A DNA stretch of 63,095 bases, filler included, from Choristocarpus tenellus KU-1152 (lineage: Eukaryota > Protista > Phaeophyceae), in NCBI GenBank assembly GCA_964200185.2. It is 9 parts of 9 records of this genome, joined end to end, with 100 filler letters (N's around TTAATTAATTAA, not from the genome) between each part and the next. Parts side by side here need not be neighbours in the genome. Positions count along the whole stretch, not along the records: positions 1 to 7,311 come from CAXNAD020006355.1; 8 more parts are not named here. The stretch is one strand, 5' to 3'. Under the pieces are notes generated by a model. It searched no databases. It was not told the DNA's origin and saw only the letters and a program-made list of their open reading frames with translations. Within the stretch, counting starts at the first letter, position 1; each line of letters begins with the position of its first letter. Of the stretch, positions 1 to 16,700 are shown piece by piece. The translations under genes were made by a program, and so were the position numbers.

Positions 1-517
1 CGTATGAAGGGTACAGGGGTTCTACCTATGACTCCAAGCAGGTACTCGTTAGCTACTACTGAATCGTCGTTTACTTCATACGGGACCATCTTTTAACACC
101 TCTCAGCCGGTAGCATCTAACCCATGCATTCCCCAACCTCCTGTACTTGCATATCCCTCTTGACCTTATTTTCGCCCCCCTTTTTTATTGTGTGGCACTT
201 ATTATTAAGAGTTGGAGACATTCTATCTGCTTATTCTGAGTCTAAAGTAGATGAAGGGGCCAACATGCAAGGAGCAGAGGAATTGTATCGTGTTTTTTTT
301 TTGTGGCAGCGAGTCAGTATATTTGAGGTCCCTCATGGTGAATGAAACAGGTGTTATCTTGGGTAATCGGGTTGGTTTCATTACCTAGCCCACTGCTGCA
401 CTATGTCACGAAATCACTTTCCTACTAAATGAAATAAATGGACCTAAATACACAATGTTTCAAACTCCAGTTCTCTCCTGTAGTAGACCATCCACGACTT
501 GCTTCTAAGTTAAGAAG

Positions 518-769
518 GATTCAAACCAAGCGAGAGGTAAGCAGGTGGACCCTGTTGCATTCAAACTCATATTTTTTGTCCTGTGCAATACACTCTATTT
601 CATTGCCATATGTGCACGTCAGTGTACACAAAATTGATATTCCCCTTTCCGTACACAAAGTGACACCATAATTCAGTCGAAGCTCATTGTGCATTGTGCA
701 AACGCATTTTTTGGCCTTTCTAGAGATTCTCCAGATGCAACCCTGCCAACCTCTCAGTTGATTTGGTTT
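518..769. mobile_element. MITE subfamily D (~250 bp), degenerate copy
   Basis: Ends GATTCAAACCAAGCGAGAGGTAAGCAGG ... CCTGCCAACCTCTCAGTTGATTTGGTTT are imperfect inverted repeats. The interior (AAAATTGATATTCCCCTTTCCGTACACAAAGTGACACC) recurs at 55256-55650. Confidence 0.7.
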
Positions 770-2756
770 ATTTTGCCTTACGGCATACAATTCCACGCAA
801 GGAAAGTACATCAATGTTAACGTATGATAAATATTTATGGGTTAGACAACCCTGGTACCTAATTTAAAATCCTGTCTTCGATACAAAAGAGAAATATGAT
901 AACTTATCGTGCAACTGGTGCCTGGGCCTTACATTCACCCCAGCATTTGTATCCTTTTATCTAATAATCTGCATACCCTATTCGTGGACCTTCAGACATA
1001 GGGATGCTCTCTTTGAGACCATTTCGAGGAATAACAGTCAGTGACCAGGGTTAGTTCCAAGGTGTCATGCTTGTCTCCCCCCTCAGAGTTCACACTGAGA
1101 ATTGGTGCAGATAGAGAAGGACTCAACTCTATGTGAAAACCTTCCATTTACCAGACACATTGCCAAGAGCTGCTATTGCGCATTTGGATATAGCATGCAT
1201 CTATTTATATTATTAAGGGGTCCTAGGTCTACTGTGCCATAAATGATGATACTCATCATAAACTCCACTTTATGATTTGATTGAGGTGTGCAATGAACTG
1301 ACACACGGAAAATGGATGGTTTCACAACGACTAAATAATAACTAAATAGTCAAGAAACGCAACATTTAAAATCTAGGACTTGAAGGTCGTGATGGGGTTT
1401 TACGAAACACATTAACACACCCATCACCTGTGACAGTCGTGGGATTGACTCCCTCATTGTCAAGCCCCTCCATAGTTGCCCCTCCTATTCTCCCCCCCAC
1501 ACACTAAAGAACATCCTGCATTTGGGCTCGGAGAATTAAAGGCTAGAAGTCCTACCTCGCCTTTTCTCTTATATTACAATTACATATATTAACCCAAACC
1601 CGTTGCATCAATATGCCTGCAAGACCCACTTCGTTCTCACCAGTCACGCACCACGGTTGTGGTTCGAACATTCCAAGTGACTACGGTCAGCTCTCTGTTC
1701 TGTAATTTCTGGCATCCCAAGGTAGATCATGAACGAGGTGTGGGACAGTTCCTCCTTTCTTGAGATCCACATTTTTTCTTCCTCGCTCCCTGGAGGTTTA
1801 TGTCCGTGTGTGCTTTGCTTCTTGACGTAAGACAGAGTAGCAAGCCCACACGGGTTAGCAATATTTAACTCCTGAATCCGACAAAGAAAACGGGCAACTG
1901 ATTTCCGCCAGGCAACTACACCTGCCACCATGTTTTCCGCTTATTATGATGGTGTAGAACTTGGACACTATTATTGCAAGGTATATTTTTTCTGTCCTCC
2001 ACCCTGTGCAACCTATCCACATTTCCGTCCTAGTTACATGGTCAATATAGATGCTTCATGGTTAAGGAGTCGATCAATCCCCCCCCTACCTACGGCGTGG
2101 TGTGTCCAGGTTGAGAGTATCAGGTATTGTAATGGAGGATTTGGAGTCACAAGAATAGTATATAGTCGAGGTTTTACTACTGAAATATTTTACTTTTTTT
2201 GCTCTGAAGTATGTTTATTGTAGATTTTTTATTTACCAAATTGTATTTTCACATACTAAACTATGTCACATAATAACAAACCTCAACACCGATTTGACTT
2301 GGTAGCAACAACGCCTTCGCATGTATACGTGAGTGGGTACTACTTATTATTACATTTGGCGGGCAAAAGTTCAAACCAAACAACACCACAACACAACAAC
2401 CAAGCACACGCCGGACAAGCACTTGGATGGAAGTCTGTTGCGTTTAATCGAAGCACTGTATACTAAGGGGCAACATTTTTGACTTAGTGTTCCCCATTGC
2501 TTTTGACTTGGAGGATCCATTTCTCGCGCCTCACACCTGATACATCTTTTGTCAACGGCAACGACGTGATAATCAACTTCTTTGGACGAACGGCTTATCA
2601 GAGACCGTGACCAAGTAGCTAAGGGACTAAACTGTTGGTTCACATGTACGAAAGAGCTATTGGTATCTAGCAGTGCGCGAGACTTGAGTGTGGATCTCTA
2701 ATCGTAGTGGTCCTTCTGGCTGGTCCTCACCGAGGCGTATTTGTTCAAAGGCAAAT

Positions 2757-4218
2757 ATGTTTGCCATTAGGCCAGTTGACGAGAACCACCTGGTTCAGGG
2801 ACAGAAGCATGGGGCTCCTTCTAAAAATCGAAAGACGTTGAAGATTTCAGGTGTGTCAGAGCAAATCGAAGAGATCGCCAAGAATCCCTGACTTGTGTTG
2901 AGGAAAGGGTAACCGTGGATCCTTCCCTGATTTCTGATCAGCACCAGGGCCCTTGTAACTATGACCAAAGTGTTTGTGGCGGCTTTTGGGGATTTCTAAG
3001 GCTCAGCAATGCGCCTAGAGCTGGTCCAGTGTCATGCATACTGTCCCGACATAGATTGCAGCCATGATTCATTTCCATATCGGTGGGTATTGTAGGAGTT
3101 GGATGCTTTGCCCTTTGACTACTGCCTCTAACTTCGCAAACATCACCTCCGTTTCTCCTAGTTCTAAAACATGCACTCCTCTCCCACCTACTGTGGGTTT
3201 ACAACTCATATTTTGGGTTGTCTCAGGTTCTGGTCCTGAAAACGCCAATGCTATTTCTGTGAAGGGTGGAAAGAGTTCCTTTGCACCGTCCAGTTCCAAG
3301 CAAAAACCTCGGCGTCGAGCTCTCGGTGACATATCAAACAAGGGGAAGGGTCTAGGTGGTTCGAGCAAGAACAAACCTCTGGGAAAGTCATCCGAGATTT
3401 CCTTTAGCATTCCCACCCAGCCCAAGCCTCCTGCCTCGAAGCCCATCACGGCCCCTGTCCGAAAGGTGGCCCCACCAGAAGTTCACGTAGAGGTGAGTTG
3501 AAATCTCACTCATCTGTCCCAGTCTTGTACACCAAGAAGTTTCCTTGCCAATTGCCATGAGCTCTTTTTGCGGGTGACATCTCTACCTTTGCCGTCGACA
3601 CTGACACTGGTGTGTGCAATCTTCATACTAACTTGTTATTTACCTTGGGCTGCACACTGATGTGCTTTGAGAAAACTAACATGCTGTCTAGAAAGTAATG
3701 CTCAACTCTGACTGATCTCATACATATTTATATGCAACAGATTAGCATTGAGTACTTCCATATTTAGTATGTTTGAGTTAGTGCTCGTGGTTATGGTTAT
3801 GGATGGTAACTGTCGAGAGATATTGGCAAAAGTGGAAATTGCTGCAGTGAAAAACGACCTTTAGCCTGTGGTGGTACCCCATGCGTCTCATCACAAACCT
3901 TCGATAGTACAAATTCAAAGATGTACACCGCGCCACCCATGAACTGGAGCCGCAATTTTTCTGTCAGAAAGTCATGCAGCTCTATACACTACACTGACAC
4001 GTATCCAACCCGACGAAGTACCACACCACACAATATATGTATGTTTGTAACCTTGTCCCTTTGATTATCTTGTCCTTTGGGACCGCACACAACAGGAGCC
4101 TGAAGAAGCCATGGGACGTCTTGGTGAAGAGGAAGAGGTCCTAGTTGAGAAGAAACTGACTGAGCGCATAAGTTTGCCCTTTGATGACCTTGACCACCCT
4201 GATTTCTTTTCCAAGTGC
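2757..4218 (+). CDS. Short disordered DEN-box/D-box protein; candidate securin/PATRONUS-like APC/C substrate (3' end unresolved)
   Basis: Phase-consistent exons 2757-2850 (G|gt), 3227-3492 (GAG|gtgagt) and 4096-~4218 give MFAIRPVDENHLVQGQKHGAPSKNRKTLKISGSGPENANAISVKGGKSSFAPSSSKQKPRRRALGDISNK...PEVHVEEPEEAMGRLGEEEEVLVEKKLTERISLPFDDLDHPDFFSK. RRALGDISN is a canonical RxxLxxxxN D-box. Further exons may lie at 5089-5380 and ~5738. Confidence 0.7.
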
Positions 4219-6579
4219 GTAAGCTGCGTTGTTGGCTTTAGTGGCTACATGCCGGTTTCTCCGAGCGTGTCCTGTAGTGAACCCCCCTTTTATTTTGGAG
4301 AGGTAGTCTGTTCGTAAAGTTGCAGCCTCATTTAGGCTCTTGTTGGGGGGGTTATCTTTTTTGGTCGTGATACGTACCACAGAGTTTCAAAATTTGCTGC
4401 TGATGTTGCTCCACTGAAGCAGCAGCATTCTCACCTTGGCTTCCATGTAGCTTCTTTATCCCTACTCCCTCTCCCACCAACATGCCATCCTACCTCGAAC
4501 AGTTCATCTCCTTATTCTGTTGGCTACTCCTGTAGCAGCATCATGTGACTATTTGTTTGGTTGATATTTGTGGGATATTTGTGTCTCCTCTGGTGTCACA
4601 TTAGTCTAAGGTTGGTACTGATCATGCTGACCGAATTACCTTATTTTTTTTGTTCAACTACACTTTTGCACACTATTCAAGAATCTGCGACATCATCTTG
4701 AATAGTAGCCTCATGGTATCTCTTTCAAGACGCCTTGAAAATATTTGAGCGAACCGTTCACAGCAACTAACCACACCACATTTCTTGCTATTGAAATCCT
4801 TTGCTCTCTGTTTTGAATCTCTTTGAAAAAGCAACAACTGGTTCAAACTTGCTCTTCTGCATTTGCAATTGTTACTGCATACAGATTCTCAGAGATCACC
4901 CTTGATTCTTTCTTCCCCGGTGCAGGGGGGGGGGGGGGTAAATAACTGTACAAGGATGTATAAAGTTAAACAGTACAGGTTGAATGTTTTTCCGGTGTGA
5001 TACTTACTCTTAATATATTTATTTTTGTTGTGTTCTCACACGGGTAAGGAAGGTTGATATTTCAGTGATATTTCAGTAACCTTTCCAGGACACTTCTTGG
5101 AAAGGTTCACATCCCCTGGAATGGAATTTATCACAAGTTGTGCAAGACTGATTGCACATCGACTTCTTCCTCTGTGCCCCTCTTGCGCAATGTGGGGGAT
5201 GCTTGTGGTTTTTGTGATACCCAGTGACATTATTGGGTGTGGTAGTGCTCAGGGTCTAGGATTGGAGGAAGGATCAAAGGAGGGGGTGGGGTCCAATGTG
5301 GGTACAGATGTTCATTTGAAGAAATTGGACCTTGAGATGAAGAGGGATCTGGAGTGGATGCGCTTGGCTGATGTTGATGGTGAGCGGAATGTGTTGGTTA
5401 GAACTAGTTCCAAGAATAAAGCATGCCTATTTTTTCCGAATTTGTCCTTGTGTTGGTAAAACTGTGCAACCAGTATATGTGTATGTATATATGTATGTAT
5501 GTGTATGTATATATATAGTGAGATACGAACTGTATAAGGACGTTGGGGTAGGGTTAGGGATACATGAGATGATGATGCTATTGAATTGATTATACTGGCT
5601 CTGCTGTGCTATTCCTTGGATTATTATTGTCACGAATTTGTTTTTATTCATGTGTAAAATATTATTCTGTAGGAGAAACAATGGGTTGTTGAACTATTGT
5701 TGGATAACGAGATAATTGATAGTAATGTCTTTGTCAGGTGACTACGAGAATATTATCTGGGTTATTACAGTACCATGAGAAGTATCCTAGAAAAGGAATG
5801 TTGTAGCAAGTAGCACAGGTTGAGTGACGAGTTATTAGTGATCAGGGATGAGTGAAAGGTTTATCCCCCCCCCCTGCTTGGATTGTGTTTCTCACTCCAT
5901 CTTTCTACCAGCTATAACATAACTGGGAAGGGATTAATCTACATATTTAGACTTGCAATTCTGCATCTTCTTTAACAATTATTATTGATGTTTATTGTAG
6001 AGTTACTGGGGAGTGGGGTTAGGTTTCTATGTGTGTATCTTGCAAAGATTTGAAGAGTGTCAAGGCTGCAAAGGGATGTGTGTCTTAATAGGTAAATGGT
6101 ATGGTTAGGGCAATCTATTCTAAGTGACTACTACTTCATTGCCTACCTTGATACTTTAGGTCACTGGAGGGGCCCACAAACCCCATGATCTGTCTATTTT
6201 ACCCAGCCTTAATGCTGTTAGTAAGAACATTTGAGATGTAAGGTGGAACCCAGCAGCCAGTGTGTACTCCTACCAAACTGAACTATGTATATGAAACTGA
6301 ACTATGTATCAGTATATTCTACCTTTTTTTGATTGGCTGAAATGGAATTTGTGAACGTCCTGATTGGCTTATGCTCGAACTCCTTCGCTTGTAATGTGTA
6401 CTGAGTCTTCCCCCTTGCCAGAGAGAAATCTTATTTTGCCATTTTACCCTTAAGTGTAATGCCATGTTTTATTTTTTTTCATATTTCTGAGCTTGGAAGA
6501 ATAAAATGTGGAGTGCAATAGTGGACTCATTTTTTTGAGATGTATATGGATGGGACCTTGGGGGCAATGGCATCTGTGT

Positions 6580-7187
6580 GTAACCCTAACCCTAACCCCA
6601 CCAGGCCGAGCCTCGAACACTGAAATTTCACTCGGAAGACTTGTGATTGCAAGGTTAGGCACTTGCTATGGGTAGGTTGATGGTGCTTGGATTTTGTGGA
6701 CGTTGCCTGACCCAACTCTATCCGAGATCACCCTATAACCCTAACCCTAACACCTGTAACCACAAGTTGTTGCTTCTGATTTTGGGTTAGGGTTAGGGTT
6801 AGGGTCGATTGATGAATTAGGGTTAGGGTCAGGGTCGGTTTGATGAATTAGGGTTAGGGTTAGGGTCGATTTGATGGATTGCAACTATTTACAGGTTGAA
6901 CGTGGTCAACCTTCCACTGTGGTGAATCCTTGGACTTCCATTGCGTTGGCTCTAGAATTTTCTCTCAGATCTTTGTTTTGCAGGCTTATTATTGTGGGAG
7001 GTGCCTTGCACAACCATACCTTTGCTTGTGTGGCATTTGGTTAGGGTTAGGGCTAGGGTTGGGGTTGGTGGATCATAGTTGTTGAAAGCTGTAGCCCAGT
7101 CTGTTTTTGTGAGGGGTATGTTTGTCATCATTCCACTCACCGATTCATCCTATCAAAGGAGAAGTTGTATAAGGTGGGTTAGGGTTA
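6580..7187. repeat. Cluster of interstitial telomere-like (TTAGGG/CCCTAA)n tracts including a composite minisatellite
   Basis: CCCTAA tracts at ~6580-6598 and ~6737-6750. Three units of (TTAGGG)3-4+TCGATT(T)GATGAA at ~6784-6878. TTAGGG-like tracts at ~7039-7064 and ~7176-7187. Confidence 0.85.
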
Positions 7188-7311
7188 CTACATTGAATAT
7201 TTTTGGTATGAAGTGAAAGACTTTTGACACTTGTTCCCAATGGTGTTCAGGTATAGAGCAGGAAGAGAGCAGCTTTACACCAGACCACCCGTTAACTGGG
7301 CCACCTTGGGG

Positions 7312-12260: not shown

Positions 12261-13759
12261 GATTCCAGTTTAAGGTTAAGGAGGATATCAGGAAATGAAG
12301 GTAAAAACAAGGAGGTGAGGACAAGACCAATTATTGGGATACGAAATATAATAAAACCATTATGGTGGGGTCATTGATCCTGATTTGAGATTATGTGGGA
12401 CTACCTTGGCCTACAGGCCATGTACATGTATAGTCGCAGTGCTGCAGAGCAATGTTCATAAAATCATTGCTTTGTTCTTGCACACAGAGGTGCTCTGAAC
12501 TTCTCCGAAGCACCAAGAACACCAACAGTAGAAACGTGATGGAGCAATCAATGTGACCAAAAATGGTATTATTCCAAACACTGCCAGATGCAGTAGTGGC
12601 AACTGGCAGGTTGTTTCAAGTTGGGCATACTAGACTCGATACTGGATGTTGACCTGGAACCATGAGGTGAATGGCAGTACCCACTGGGTGAGTGCGGTCC
12701 AAAGCCTAACACACATATACACATACACAGCTAAGGATGGTGTACCAAATATCATACATTTTGTGCACGTTATTTACGCAGCACCAAATGGATGAGGTGA
12801 TTAATCATTGAAAGTATGTAAAGTTAACCAAAACGGTGGTGTGTCTGTAGTGCACATGTGTACAGAATTAGCTACAACGGGTCTAAAAACATACTTTGAA
12901 GTAGAACTACTTTGAATGAATGGGCACCTATCTCGCTTGGAAATTCTCAGGTCGCCAGTGAGGAGCCATAAAGATTAGTAGTCCATGCTGGGTGATCAAA
13001 CACAATATGTGAACGCCGTCTTGCACTCCTTGAAAATCCAGTTCATTTACCGAGTACAGGTCGATGCAACAGAGTCTCTCGACGTGCTTACCTAGCTAAC
13101 CGACAGCTTCCATTGTAACCTTCTCCCAGAGAGGAAATATCTCAAGTTTACAAGAGCAGTCAATCAACATCAGAGCAATGAGTTGGTGGGTGAGATATGC
13201 ACATATACATCTGCAGTTTACACACACGAATGAGTAGATACCATTAGCAGCGTAAAAATACCTCCCAAATACCCATGTATGAGATGGGCACCCACCTGGA
13301 TGAGCAAGAGGGTCACAGGTCAGCTCCCAGAAGTAAGCCCCTGAGCGACGGGAGAAAGCAGACTGAGTCGGCAGGCCCAGAGGAAAGAGTGCAGGCGTCT
13401 CATAACCTATCAGTGGAACAGATGGGGCAATCAACCCAGATATCGATGCACTTGAAAACAGAATGCCTGCAGATTTTAGAATATTTGTGGTAAGAGGTGA
13501 AAACCATCACTCACTATGCATTCTATGATGGTATGTATATCCCATACACATTGTATATATAGTATTTGTAAGATAGATATACATTTGGTTAAGCCTGAAC
13601 AATGGGTGGAAAACCCATCTACTAAACCAAACCCACCCTACATTAACCCACATATGGAGACGTAACCACGAGACCGTTGGTCGGCTTTCGTTGGTTTGGA
13701 AGATCAGAAATCTAGTAGGGGTCTAAGAGAAACAATCCTCGACGGGGAAGTTGAGGGTC

Positions 13760-16700
13760 ATGGAGGAGACCGACAATGCTCCCTCCACCTCCCCCATTCG
13801 ACGTATCCGAGTGATCTTCCCCGACTCCTCTGGATGCACGCTAAAAAGCAACCCACGACTCACGCAGAGGTGGGTTCTCGTTCCTTCCAATGTGCGAGTA
13901 GTAGGAGATCTTTGCCACTGCCTGGCACGCCAGGTCAAATCAAAGATGGGCAGGAACCCCTTCTTGCTGGAGCTGAATGACTTTGTCTTGCCTCCAATGG
14001 AGAGCATAGATATCCTCAGAGAAACTGATGTGGTTACTCTTCGGTCGGAACTAAGCCTATTGGACTTGAAATCTAGTAGGGAAGAGGGTGATGGGATGGA
14101 CAAGGGTAATGGCAAGAGGAACGGTATTCGTAAAGGAAAGACAATTGATGGCGAGGGGAAAGGCAAGAATAAAGGCAAAGGCAAATACGAAGGCACGAGA
14201 AGCGGGAAAGGGAAAAGCCTAAGGCCGGGAGCTCCTGACAGGACCACGAACAAGAAATTTGCAGCATCAGACACACGGAAAGGTAAAAAAAACAAGAAGA
14301 GGAACCTCGTCGGAGGTCAGGTGGGAGGTGGGGACGAAGACAGGTGTGACAAGAGACTGAAGGTGGTAAAGGGCATGGTTGCTTTAGACGCAGCAGCTGC
14401 ACAGGATACTGCTTTGAGTGGGGGCTTGCCTGCTAAGGCCTTGGGCAAGGGTAGACTTAACGCTGGGAAGATACTTTCGAGTAGGGATTCCAAGAAGATG
14501 TCGGACGGTGTCAATGCTCTAAAAAGAGTTCATCGTGTCAAGGAGAAGCTGGGCAGCAAGGGACGGAGCAGCAGTGTCAATAGAGGAGGCAAAAAAGTTC
14601 TCAAGAAGACTGGGAAATCTAAATCTTTTGCTGCAAGGTCTGTGGTCACTTCGTGCCCCCCACCGGCAAGCTCTTCTTCTCCATGCGATAGCTCCGAGGA
14701 TGATAGCTCTGAAGAAAGCTCGACACAAGGAGGCAGTGAAGTTGCAAATGGAAGGGGGAAGGGGAAAGCTGGTGCTGTCACACTTCACAATGATAGCTCC
14801 TCGGAAGATAGTAGCTCTTCTTCCTCAAATGAGGAAAATGTCACCTCCTCTAACAGCTCTAAGAAAACCTCCACAGGAAGAGTTAGCGACTTAGCCAATG
14901 GAAAGGAGGGGAAAGGTTGTGGTGCTACCGCACATCAAATTACACACCTCCACCCCCCATCCTCCTCCTCATCTTCTTCAAGCAATAGTTCATCATCAAC
15001 ATCATCATCCTCGTCTTCCTCCTCTTCTGATGAAGATTCAGATTCTGACGGACCTGAGACACCTTCTACCCCACACATAAACACTAAAGACGCTACATCA
15101 CCTGCCACAACCAAGGACCCTAAACAAAATGGTGGGTCCAGAACATCGAAAACCTCATCGAGTAGCACTAAATCAGTAAGGGCAGATACTGGGATCAAGG
15201 GAGGGGCATCAGTGTCCACAACCATGGCAGTTGTCAAGGACATGGAGGTGAAACATCCTGGATCTCTACCACTGAGGTCAGAGGATGATACAGCCCTATC
15301 CCCACAAGGGAGGGGAAGGGGTTACCCTCATGATAGGCACAGCTTGGGTGGGTTACAGGGCTCTTTGGGTAATGAAGAAGGACTCAGAACGTCTGGGGAG
15401 GAGGGGGTTTGGGAGAGCGGGAGAGGTAGGGGCTATGGCAACACATCTGGCATGGCGAGTGGGACCTACTGGGAAGGTGGTGGGAGGGGTGCGAAGGGAA
15501 GAAGGAGATCTCATGGTGAAGGCAGGTTACTTTTTTCAGGTTACAAGAAGGACTACACGGTAATTGCATCAGTGCACAGCAAGGAAAAGGACTCGACTCA
15601 AGGGCTGAACGGTCATCTTGAGGAAACACGCAGGCAGGACGATCAAGGGAGGTTTGGGGTTGGTTGTTGACTTAGAGGTTTGTCTCCTGTTTCTTAGGGA
15701 GTGAGGCTTCTCTGTATTTGACCTAATTTCACTTCCCAATCACGCAGACTAGGAATCTTTCAATATCATTTTATGCTTGAAACTGTTGAGATTTTTTTTT
15801 CTTCGCTCTTTTGCTCTTGGCTACTACAAGTTCCAAGAGTGTTGCATACATAGCATGGGAAGGCATAAGTAATTGGACCGAGGATCATGCAATGTAAGAC
15901 TATTTTTGAAAGCTAGGGGATATAACGTGAAAGACAGATTTCAGAACAAACTTTCCTGGATGTGGCTTCAAGTTGTGATGGAGACAATTATTACTACTTG
16001 AAACTGCATTTACTGGATACCTTGTGGTGCATTAATGACTGTTGAGAGACGAGTGAGATCAAGCAGAATGATACTTCAAGGTCCATCATCTTACCCTTTT
16101 TCCTAAATGTTTTGAAATCGCTCTCTATAATTTCAGGTAGCATTATTGCATGTACGGCTTTGACTTTGGCTGGCTTACTAAGGGAAATGGAATCAGAAAT
16201 TTGTCGTTGTCCATAGGGACACAGTATGAAAATAATCTGTTCCAATTGACCCCACACTTGGATCCCCCTCGGCCCCTCCCCCTGCTTTCCTTGGCTACAT
16301 TCTCTACCCTCCTCCTTCCCATCACCCACCTTTCCCACAATCTTCACCCTTCTACAGTAGAGATACTCTGCAATACAATGCTCTATACCGTGCTATATTG
16401 TCACACTCCACGCTTACCCCACTTAGGTACCTGAAGTTTCCTGAGTTTCCAGTAGACATGCAACCACTGCCTGGTGATGTACTTGCCTTCAAGATTTTGT
16501 CGCTCAATGAGGAGACTTGGACTCCTGAACTGTCTGACTTCATGGAGGGCGAGGTATGTTTTTGTTCATGGTTATATCCTTTCTTGTTGTGTTTTCTGAC
16601 ATATCCATTTTTCCCGCACTATGCCCATTAGGGTGCATCCCCTTTTTTTGTGTCTGCTTTATTCTGTGTGTTCATGAGGTTTTCGTGTCAGGGGCCTACT

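Follow-up and report, generated by a model that had tools for sequence, protein, structure and literature searches.

To our knowledge, separase is universal, and its inhibitor securin is known only from animals, fungi and plants, in plants since 2019. Securins are recognized by KEN and D boxes near the N-terminus, by disorder and by a conserved patch that contains Glu, and their sequence drifts too fast for homology searches (PMC6690013). In human securin the pseudo-substrate EIEKFFP is followed in order by NxLxPhiE, LPE and a hydrophobic stretch (PMC6858450; PMC10317155), and an LPE docking motif directly after the pseudo-substrate is found in vertebrates and some lower eukaryotes (PMC6858450). 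The consensus recognized by separase is (S/D/E)xExxR, with the known sites lying in unstructured chain (PMC10317155). OSD1/UVI4 of plants and Mes1 of fission yeast carry a different signature, consisting of a GxEN/KEN box, a D-box about 25 residues on and a C-terminal MR tail, with the GxEN of OSD1 at residues 80-83 and its D-box at 104-110 (PMC3406007). The locus described here, from the brown alga Choristocarpus tenellus KU-1152, encodes a protein that resembles the securins PTTG1, Pds1/Cut2, PATRONUS1/2 and rice RSS1 in being disordered in its N-half, in having KEN/DEN-type and D-box motifs in the N-terminal part followed by glutamate-rich and hydrophobic patches, in lacking the sequence conservation that securins also lack between lineages, and in being encoded together with a separase gene. 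The protein is very probably a substrate of the APC/C, and we tentatively propose that it is a securin, which on its sequence features is the best single functional reading and the most likely role, although we rate it at somewhat less than an even chance.

The window is the whole stretch of DNA that was analysed (63,095 nucleotides, filler included), and its positions 1-7311 are all of contig C6355, from an assembly of 164 Mb in 27,310 contigs. The X2 data were taken as RNA from their behaviour on the window (exon depth and spliced joints), no public run being recorded as RNA. The locus covers roughly the 5' two-thirds of an expressed brown-alga gene whose 3' end lies off the contig, and has the following features:

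2450-2756, plus strand: 5' UTR; the RNA contig begins at 2450, and an X2 record spans 2450-2846.
2757-2850, plus strand: coding exon 1, residues 1-31 plus 1 nt; joint 2850/3227, GT..AG, X2 depth 759; DEN at nt 2778-2786.
2851-3226, plus strand: intron 1, 376 nt; GT..AG joint, X2 depth 0 in bin 2890-3067.
3227-3492, plus strand: coding exon 2, residues 32-120, bounded by RNA joints; GPEN at 3232-3243 and D-box at 3313-3339.
3493-4095, plus strand: intron 2, 603 nt; GT..AG joint, X2 depth 4-7.
4096-4214, plus strand: coding exon 3, residues 121-159 plus 2 nt; donor AA/GTGCGT at 4214.
4215-5224, plus strand: intron 3, 1010 nt, partly retained; joint 4214 to 5225, GT..AG, X2 depth 462.
5225-5379, plus strand: coding exon 4, residues 160-211 plus 1 nt; acceptor from an RNA joint, 3' end inferred.

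A single 786-nt X2 contig (depth 759) joins 2450-2850, 3227-3492 and 4096-4214 across GT..AG introns, and in the proposed exons X2 reaches a depth of 360-760, compared with 0-7 in introns 1 and 2 and 0 before 2356. Of the clean spliced ORF that the first-pass annotation had proposed, introns 1 and 2 proved exact by the X2 RNA, but exon 3 ends at 4214 and not at 4218. Checked against the same RNA, the model as a whole is confirmed in its splicing and gains exon 4 (5225-5379), giving a joined frame of at least 211 codons that is open across three junctions and still open where it ends, in phase 1. The start codon (ATG at 2757) is secure, since an in-frame TGA lies upstream at 2685 inside the transcript and the 5' UTR holds just one uORF, of 8 codons, at 2644. 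The end of exon 4 was placed at 5379 from the fall in X2 depth from 500 (bin 5204-5381) to 1.1 (bin 5382-5559) together with the donor G/GTGAGC. No RNA joint out of 5379 is listed and no contig bin outside repeats is at exon depth, so that exon 5 most likely lies beyond the contig end; the assembly, searched with the final 432 nt, yielded no contig that overlaps the end of C6355. The gene is single-copy in its own genome. Intron 3 is retained in about 8% of transcripts (an unspliced X2 contig over 4185-5254, depth 41), and in the retained form a stop at 4315-4317 leads to a predicted product of 193 aa. X2 also matches 4185-5254 and 5836-7298 perfectly and unspliced at depth 31-41, with depth near zero in introns 1 and 2 and where intron 4 begins; this unspliced coverage may reflect retention of intron 3 together with a second, distinct transcript further downstream, its strand unassigned.

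The predicted protein contains the degron motifs that had been described at first reading, namely DEN (residues 8-10), a second xEN within GPEN (34-37) and the D-box RRALGDISN (61-69; nt 3313-3339). A strict D-box pattern is matched at a single place in the six translated frames of the window and in 0 of 300 window shuffles; the xEN motifs alone are within chance, and the D-box is the only one of the degrons beyond it. The D-box of Arabidopsis PATRONUS is RKALNDITN, as quoted in the first-pass annotation, and the candidate's RRALGDISN closely resembles it. The switch from a basic N-half to an acidic half noted there is borne out by net charges of +17 over residues 1-115, 70% of which are disorder-promoting, and -11 over residues 116-160, which include PEVHVEEPEEAMGRLGEEEE. 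Exon 2 encodes, besides the degrons, a basic Ser/Gly/Lys/Pro-rich region, and exon 3 an acidic run, EPEEAMGRLGEEEEVLVE, followed by LPFDDLDHPDFF at 4174-4209. No S/T-P site and no ABBA motif is present in the 211-residue protein, and no globular domain is seen within these residues, the C-terminus being off the contig.

The candidate's matches to a securin pseudo-substrate are not distinctive. The pattern [SDE]xExx(non-R) is matched by EPEEAM (121-126) and EEEEVL (131-136), as chance alone would lead one to expect in an acid-rich run; EPEEAM, which had been singled out as the pseudo-substrate, was therefore an arbitrary choice, as EEEEVL matches equally 10 residues on. The sole LP motif is LPF (147-149) in place of LPE, the human NxLxPhiE motif is unmatched (DDLDHP), and the metazoan Securin family (PF04856) is not matched. 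Securins have a residue other than Arg at P1, whereas the candidate's best matches to the separase consensus have Arg there.

Sequence searches detected no relative. Pfam returned no family at E<=10, PF04856 included, for any exon or read-through frame, and exons 2 and 3 had no match at E<=10 among PDB sequences. Neither a word search with exon 2, whose length window of at most about 260 aa for a single-exon reference would pass over an orthologue of full length, nor an exhaustive HMMER search with exon 2, free of a length limit and covering 1.84 billion representative proteins, found a relative, and a metagenome scan likewise found none; search and fold queries were single exons, so that any motif across the exon 2/3 junction (PEVHVE/EPEE) was outside their span. 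The sole HMMER match, a spurious low-complexity bacterial repeat protein, was rejected as a relative. Language-model features ranked a metazoan Securin cluster third with a score of 0.84, under the 0.9 mark, and give a weak lead.

The product of exon 4 is a Gly/Glu-rich linker followed by a predicted helix that contains two motifs fitting the separase consensus:

5304-5375, plus strand: predicted amphipathic helix, residues 187-210 (single-sequence AlphaFold2, exon-4 residues 27-50, block pLDDT 83-88).
5328-5363, plus strand: adjacent [SDE]xExxR motifs DLEMKR (195-200) and DLEWMR (201-206).

In composition-preserving shuffles of the 211 aa, two or more [SDE]xExxR matches occur in 1.9% and an adjacent pair in 0.015% (1.5e-4). 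Three of the four residues conserved between DLEMKR and DLEWMR (D, L and R) differ in their codons between the units, so recent duplication is no obvious explanation of the pair. ExxR is a common salt-bridge spacing in helices, and the meaning of the DLExxR pair is ambiguous, since it falls within a predicted helix. A stretch of exon 4 at 5254-5275, GGTCTAGGATTGGAGG (translated GLGLEE), looks like a degenerate TTAGGG-type repeat of the sort also present further downstream, and part of exon 4 may be derived from such a repeat.

The genome encodes a separase on contig C135 (Peptidase_C50, E 1e-65), in whose translated frame the catalytic His and Cys are visible. At about 12540-15110 of this contig the separase has a SAP DNA-binding domain (PF02037, E 7.7e-9) in a long insert between two stretches that match Peptidase_C50. 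Complex prediction with the C-terminal 809 aa of separase and the exon 3 peptide gave scores of 0.31 and 0.08, below the 0.34 mark, and counts neither way. If the candidate is a securin, its N-terminal xEN motifs and D-box would engage Cdc20/Cdh1, leading to ubiquitination and destruction at the metaphase-anaphase transition. Before destruction, residues 116-160, which form the acidic/hydrophobic middle, would run along separase together with the helix that comes next and its two DLExxR motifs, filling or covering the active site of the protease and making the protein a securin-type inhibitor.

The securin identity suggested at first reading fits an expressed, spliced gene with a frame open over three RNA-supported junctions, an extended D-box of the form RxALGxIxN that the shuffles do not reproduce, and the hallmark layout of KEN-type and D-box motifs in the N-terminal part, disorder and then glutamate-containing patches (PMC6690013). 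It is also consistent with a single-copy gene that has no detectable relatives, as a securin would predict, in a genome that encodes separase; with the two adjacent exact matches to the separase-site consensus; with the mitotic cyclins found keeping their own N-termini and the only orphan cyclin box being cyclin-E-like; and, as a weak lead only, with the third-ranked Securin cluster below its mark. What stands against this identity is LPF for LPE, the mismatch of DDLDHP with NxLxPhiE, the chance-level EPEEAM and EEEEVL matches, and a DLExxR pair that has Arg at P1 in both motifs, unlike known securin pseudo-substrates, and lies in a predicted helix, whereas known separase sites are in unstructured chain; moreover the 3' end is off the contig, where a downstream globular domain or an MR tail may still be encoded. 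A more particular form of the proposal, which we consider unlikely, is that the gene encodes the first stramenopile securin and an unusual one, whose tandem cleavage-consensus DLEMKR-DLEWMR docks separase, so that it would act as a cleavable or substrate-competitive inhibitor and not as a classic non-cleavable pseudo-substrate.

An extended RxALGxIxN D-box near the N-terminus is most typical of cyclins and securins, and its place here in a basic, disordered N-terminus is also that seen in cyclins A and B. The candidate might be the regulatory N-terminus of an A/B-type mitotic cyclin, with the box in exons past the contig end, as the D-box RRALGDISN is of the classic cyclin-B type, the gene model is incomplete and the assembly is fragmented (27,310 contigs, with the Rad21 C-terminal domain not found), and the cyclin on C5557, with roughly 350 residues before its cyclin box in one 582-codon open frame, is a precedent for a very long N-terminus. 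Yet a genome scan with Cyclin_N (PF00134) matched 12 places, none of them on C6355, which upholds the earlier remark that no cyclin box is visible downstream as far as the contig extends (the 3' end of the gene being off it), and there is still no box 150 residues past the D-box. The helix EYxxD[ILM]Y that precedes the box in the genome's own cyclins is absent from the candidate, and these mitotic cyclins lie in long open frames, whereas the candidate gene is made of several small exons. Cyclin B, on C1377, possesses a D-box of its own (RRGLRDITN, 140 residues before the cyclin box), and its N-terminus is similar to the candidate in the D-box only. For the cyclins of C1010 (with the ABBA-like FSVYED) and C5557, too, the contig that carries the box includes the N-terminal region. 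Just one cyclin box is truncated by a contig start, that on C21399; among solved structures it matches cyclin E1 only, and the cyclin E type is not known to be a D-box cyclin. This cyclin-E-like gene is cut mid cyclin box (C21399:1-120), and the contig with the first half of the box was not found, which points to assembly incompleteness. The cyclin reading is weakened by these observations and is unlikely, and it keeps some probability because the assembly is incomplete, as the missing Rad21 C-terminal domain indicates, and one cyclin N-terminus is very long.

It is possible, if rather less than probable, that the protein, as an APC/C substrate, acts elsewhere in mitosis, for example as a regulator of the spindle, of replication licensing or of cohesion, and plays no part in inhibiting separase: the degrons are its only statistically solid features, through the D-box, KEN-type and D-box motifs occur in many unrelated disordered proteins and no homology match connects the candidate to separase, but the acidic patch and the tandem DLExxR pair are then left unexplained, and the general association of an N-terminal extended D-box with cyclins and securins tells against it. 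With GPEN at 34-37 and the D-box at 61 the candidate, domain-less like OSD1/UVI4 and Mes1, has the order and spacing of OSD1, which would suit a pseudo-substrate inhibitor of the APC/C of this type no less than a securin; such an inhibitor is nevertheless improbable here, given that the defining MR tail would fall off the contig, that the candidate has no sequence similarity or homology to the known members and that xEN motifs are frequent by chance. Finally, DLEMKR and DLEWMR fit (S/D/E)xExxR exactly, as does DREIMR of human Scc1, and their tandem arrangement is rare in shuffles, so the protein could be an APC/C-regulated substrate of separase, cut after R200 and/or R206, and not its inhibitor. 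The motifs nonetheless lie in a predicted helix and not in the unstructured chain of known sites, with ExxR an ordinary helix salt-bridge spacing, and a role as substrate is very unlikely. The candidate differs from the kleisins Scc1/Rad21, whose sites it twice resembles, in having no Rad21/Rec8 domains and in the adjacency of the motifs and their place in a predicted helix. The kleisin of the assembly itself is represented only by a first Rad21 exon on a short contig, with no Rad21 C-terminal domain found.

The genome is that of a photosynthetic organism, with more than 60 chlorophyll-binding-protein matches, and the one match tested, a fucoxanthin-chlorophyll protein, shares about 91% identity over 156 residues with FCP17 of the giant kelp Macrocystis pyrifera (PSI-FCP, PDB 9YGV; PMC13219633); no silicon transporter was found in the genome. 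A diatom origin was accordingly rejected, and the stramenopile label is borne out, the genome being that of a brown alga or of something very closely related. Downstream of exon 4, positions 5560-6090 hold a very high-copy dispersed repeat, where two bins of the DNA-like X1 data have depths of 20,024 and 8,830, compared with about 16 in flanking single-copy sequence, and many divergent copies of the repeat align at 5641-5931. Scattered interstitial telomere-like arrays, (TTAGGG)2-3 and (CCCTAA)2 with short spacers between, occupy 6584-7052, with X1 depth raised to 560-2400 and many length-variant joints. A (TG/TA)n microsatellite (5474-5517), a G14 run (4925-4938) and a C10 run (5865-5874) are also present, and public-run contigs break at the first two. 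The Myb/MSA-like core AACGG is not enriched in the window (7 found, 7.4 expected); closely spaced cores, two in the 5' UTR (2554-2593) and four ahead of the cyclin B start codon (-363 to -131), offer a lead only.

In the literature searched there was no mention of securin together with Ectocarpus, so a confirmed brown-alga securin would be new. An RNA-supported candidate from a brown alga would make the use of securin by stramenopiles directly testable and, if the securin reading is true, would add one more case for judging which features all securins share. Should the protein instead prove to inhibit the APC/C, or to be an APC/C substrate of a new kind, it would still be a rare annotated cell-cycle regulator of brown algae.
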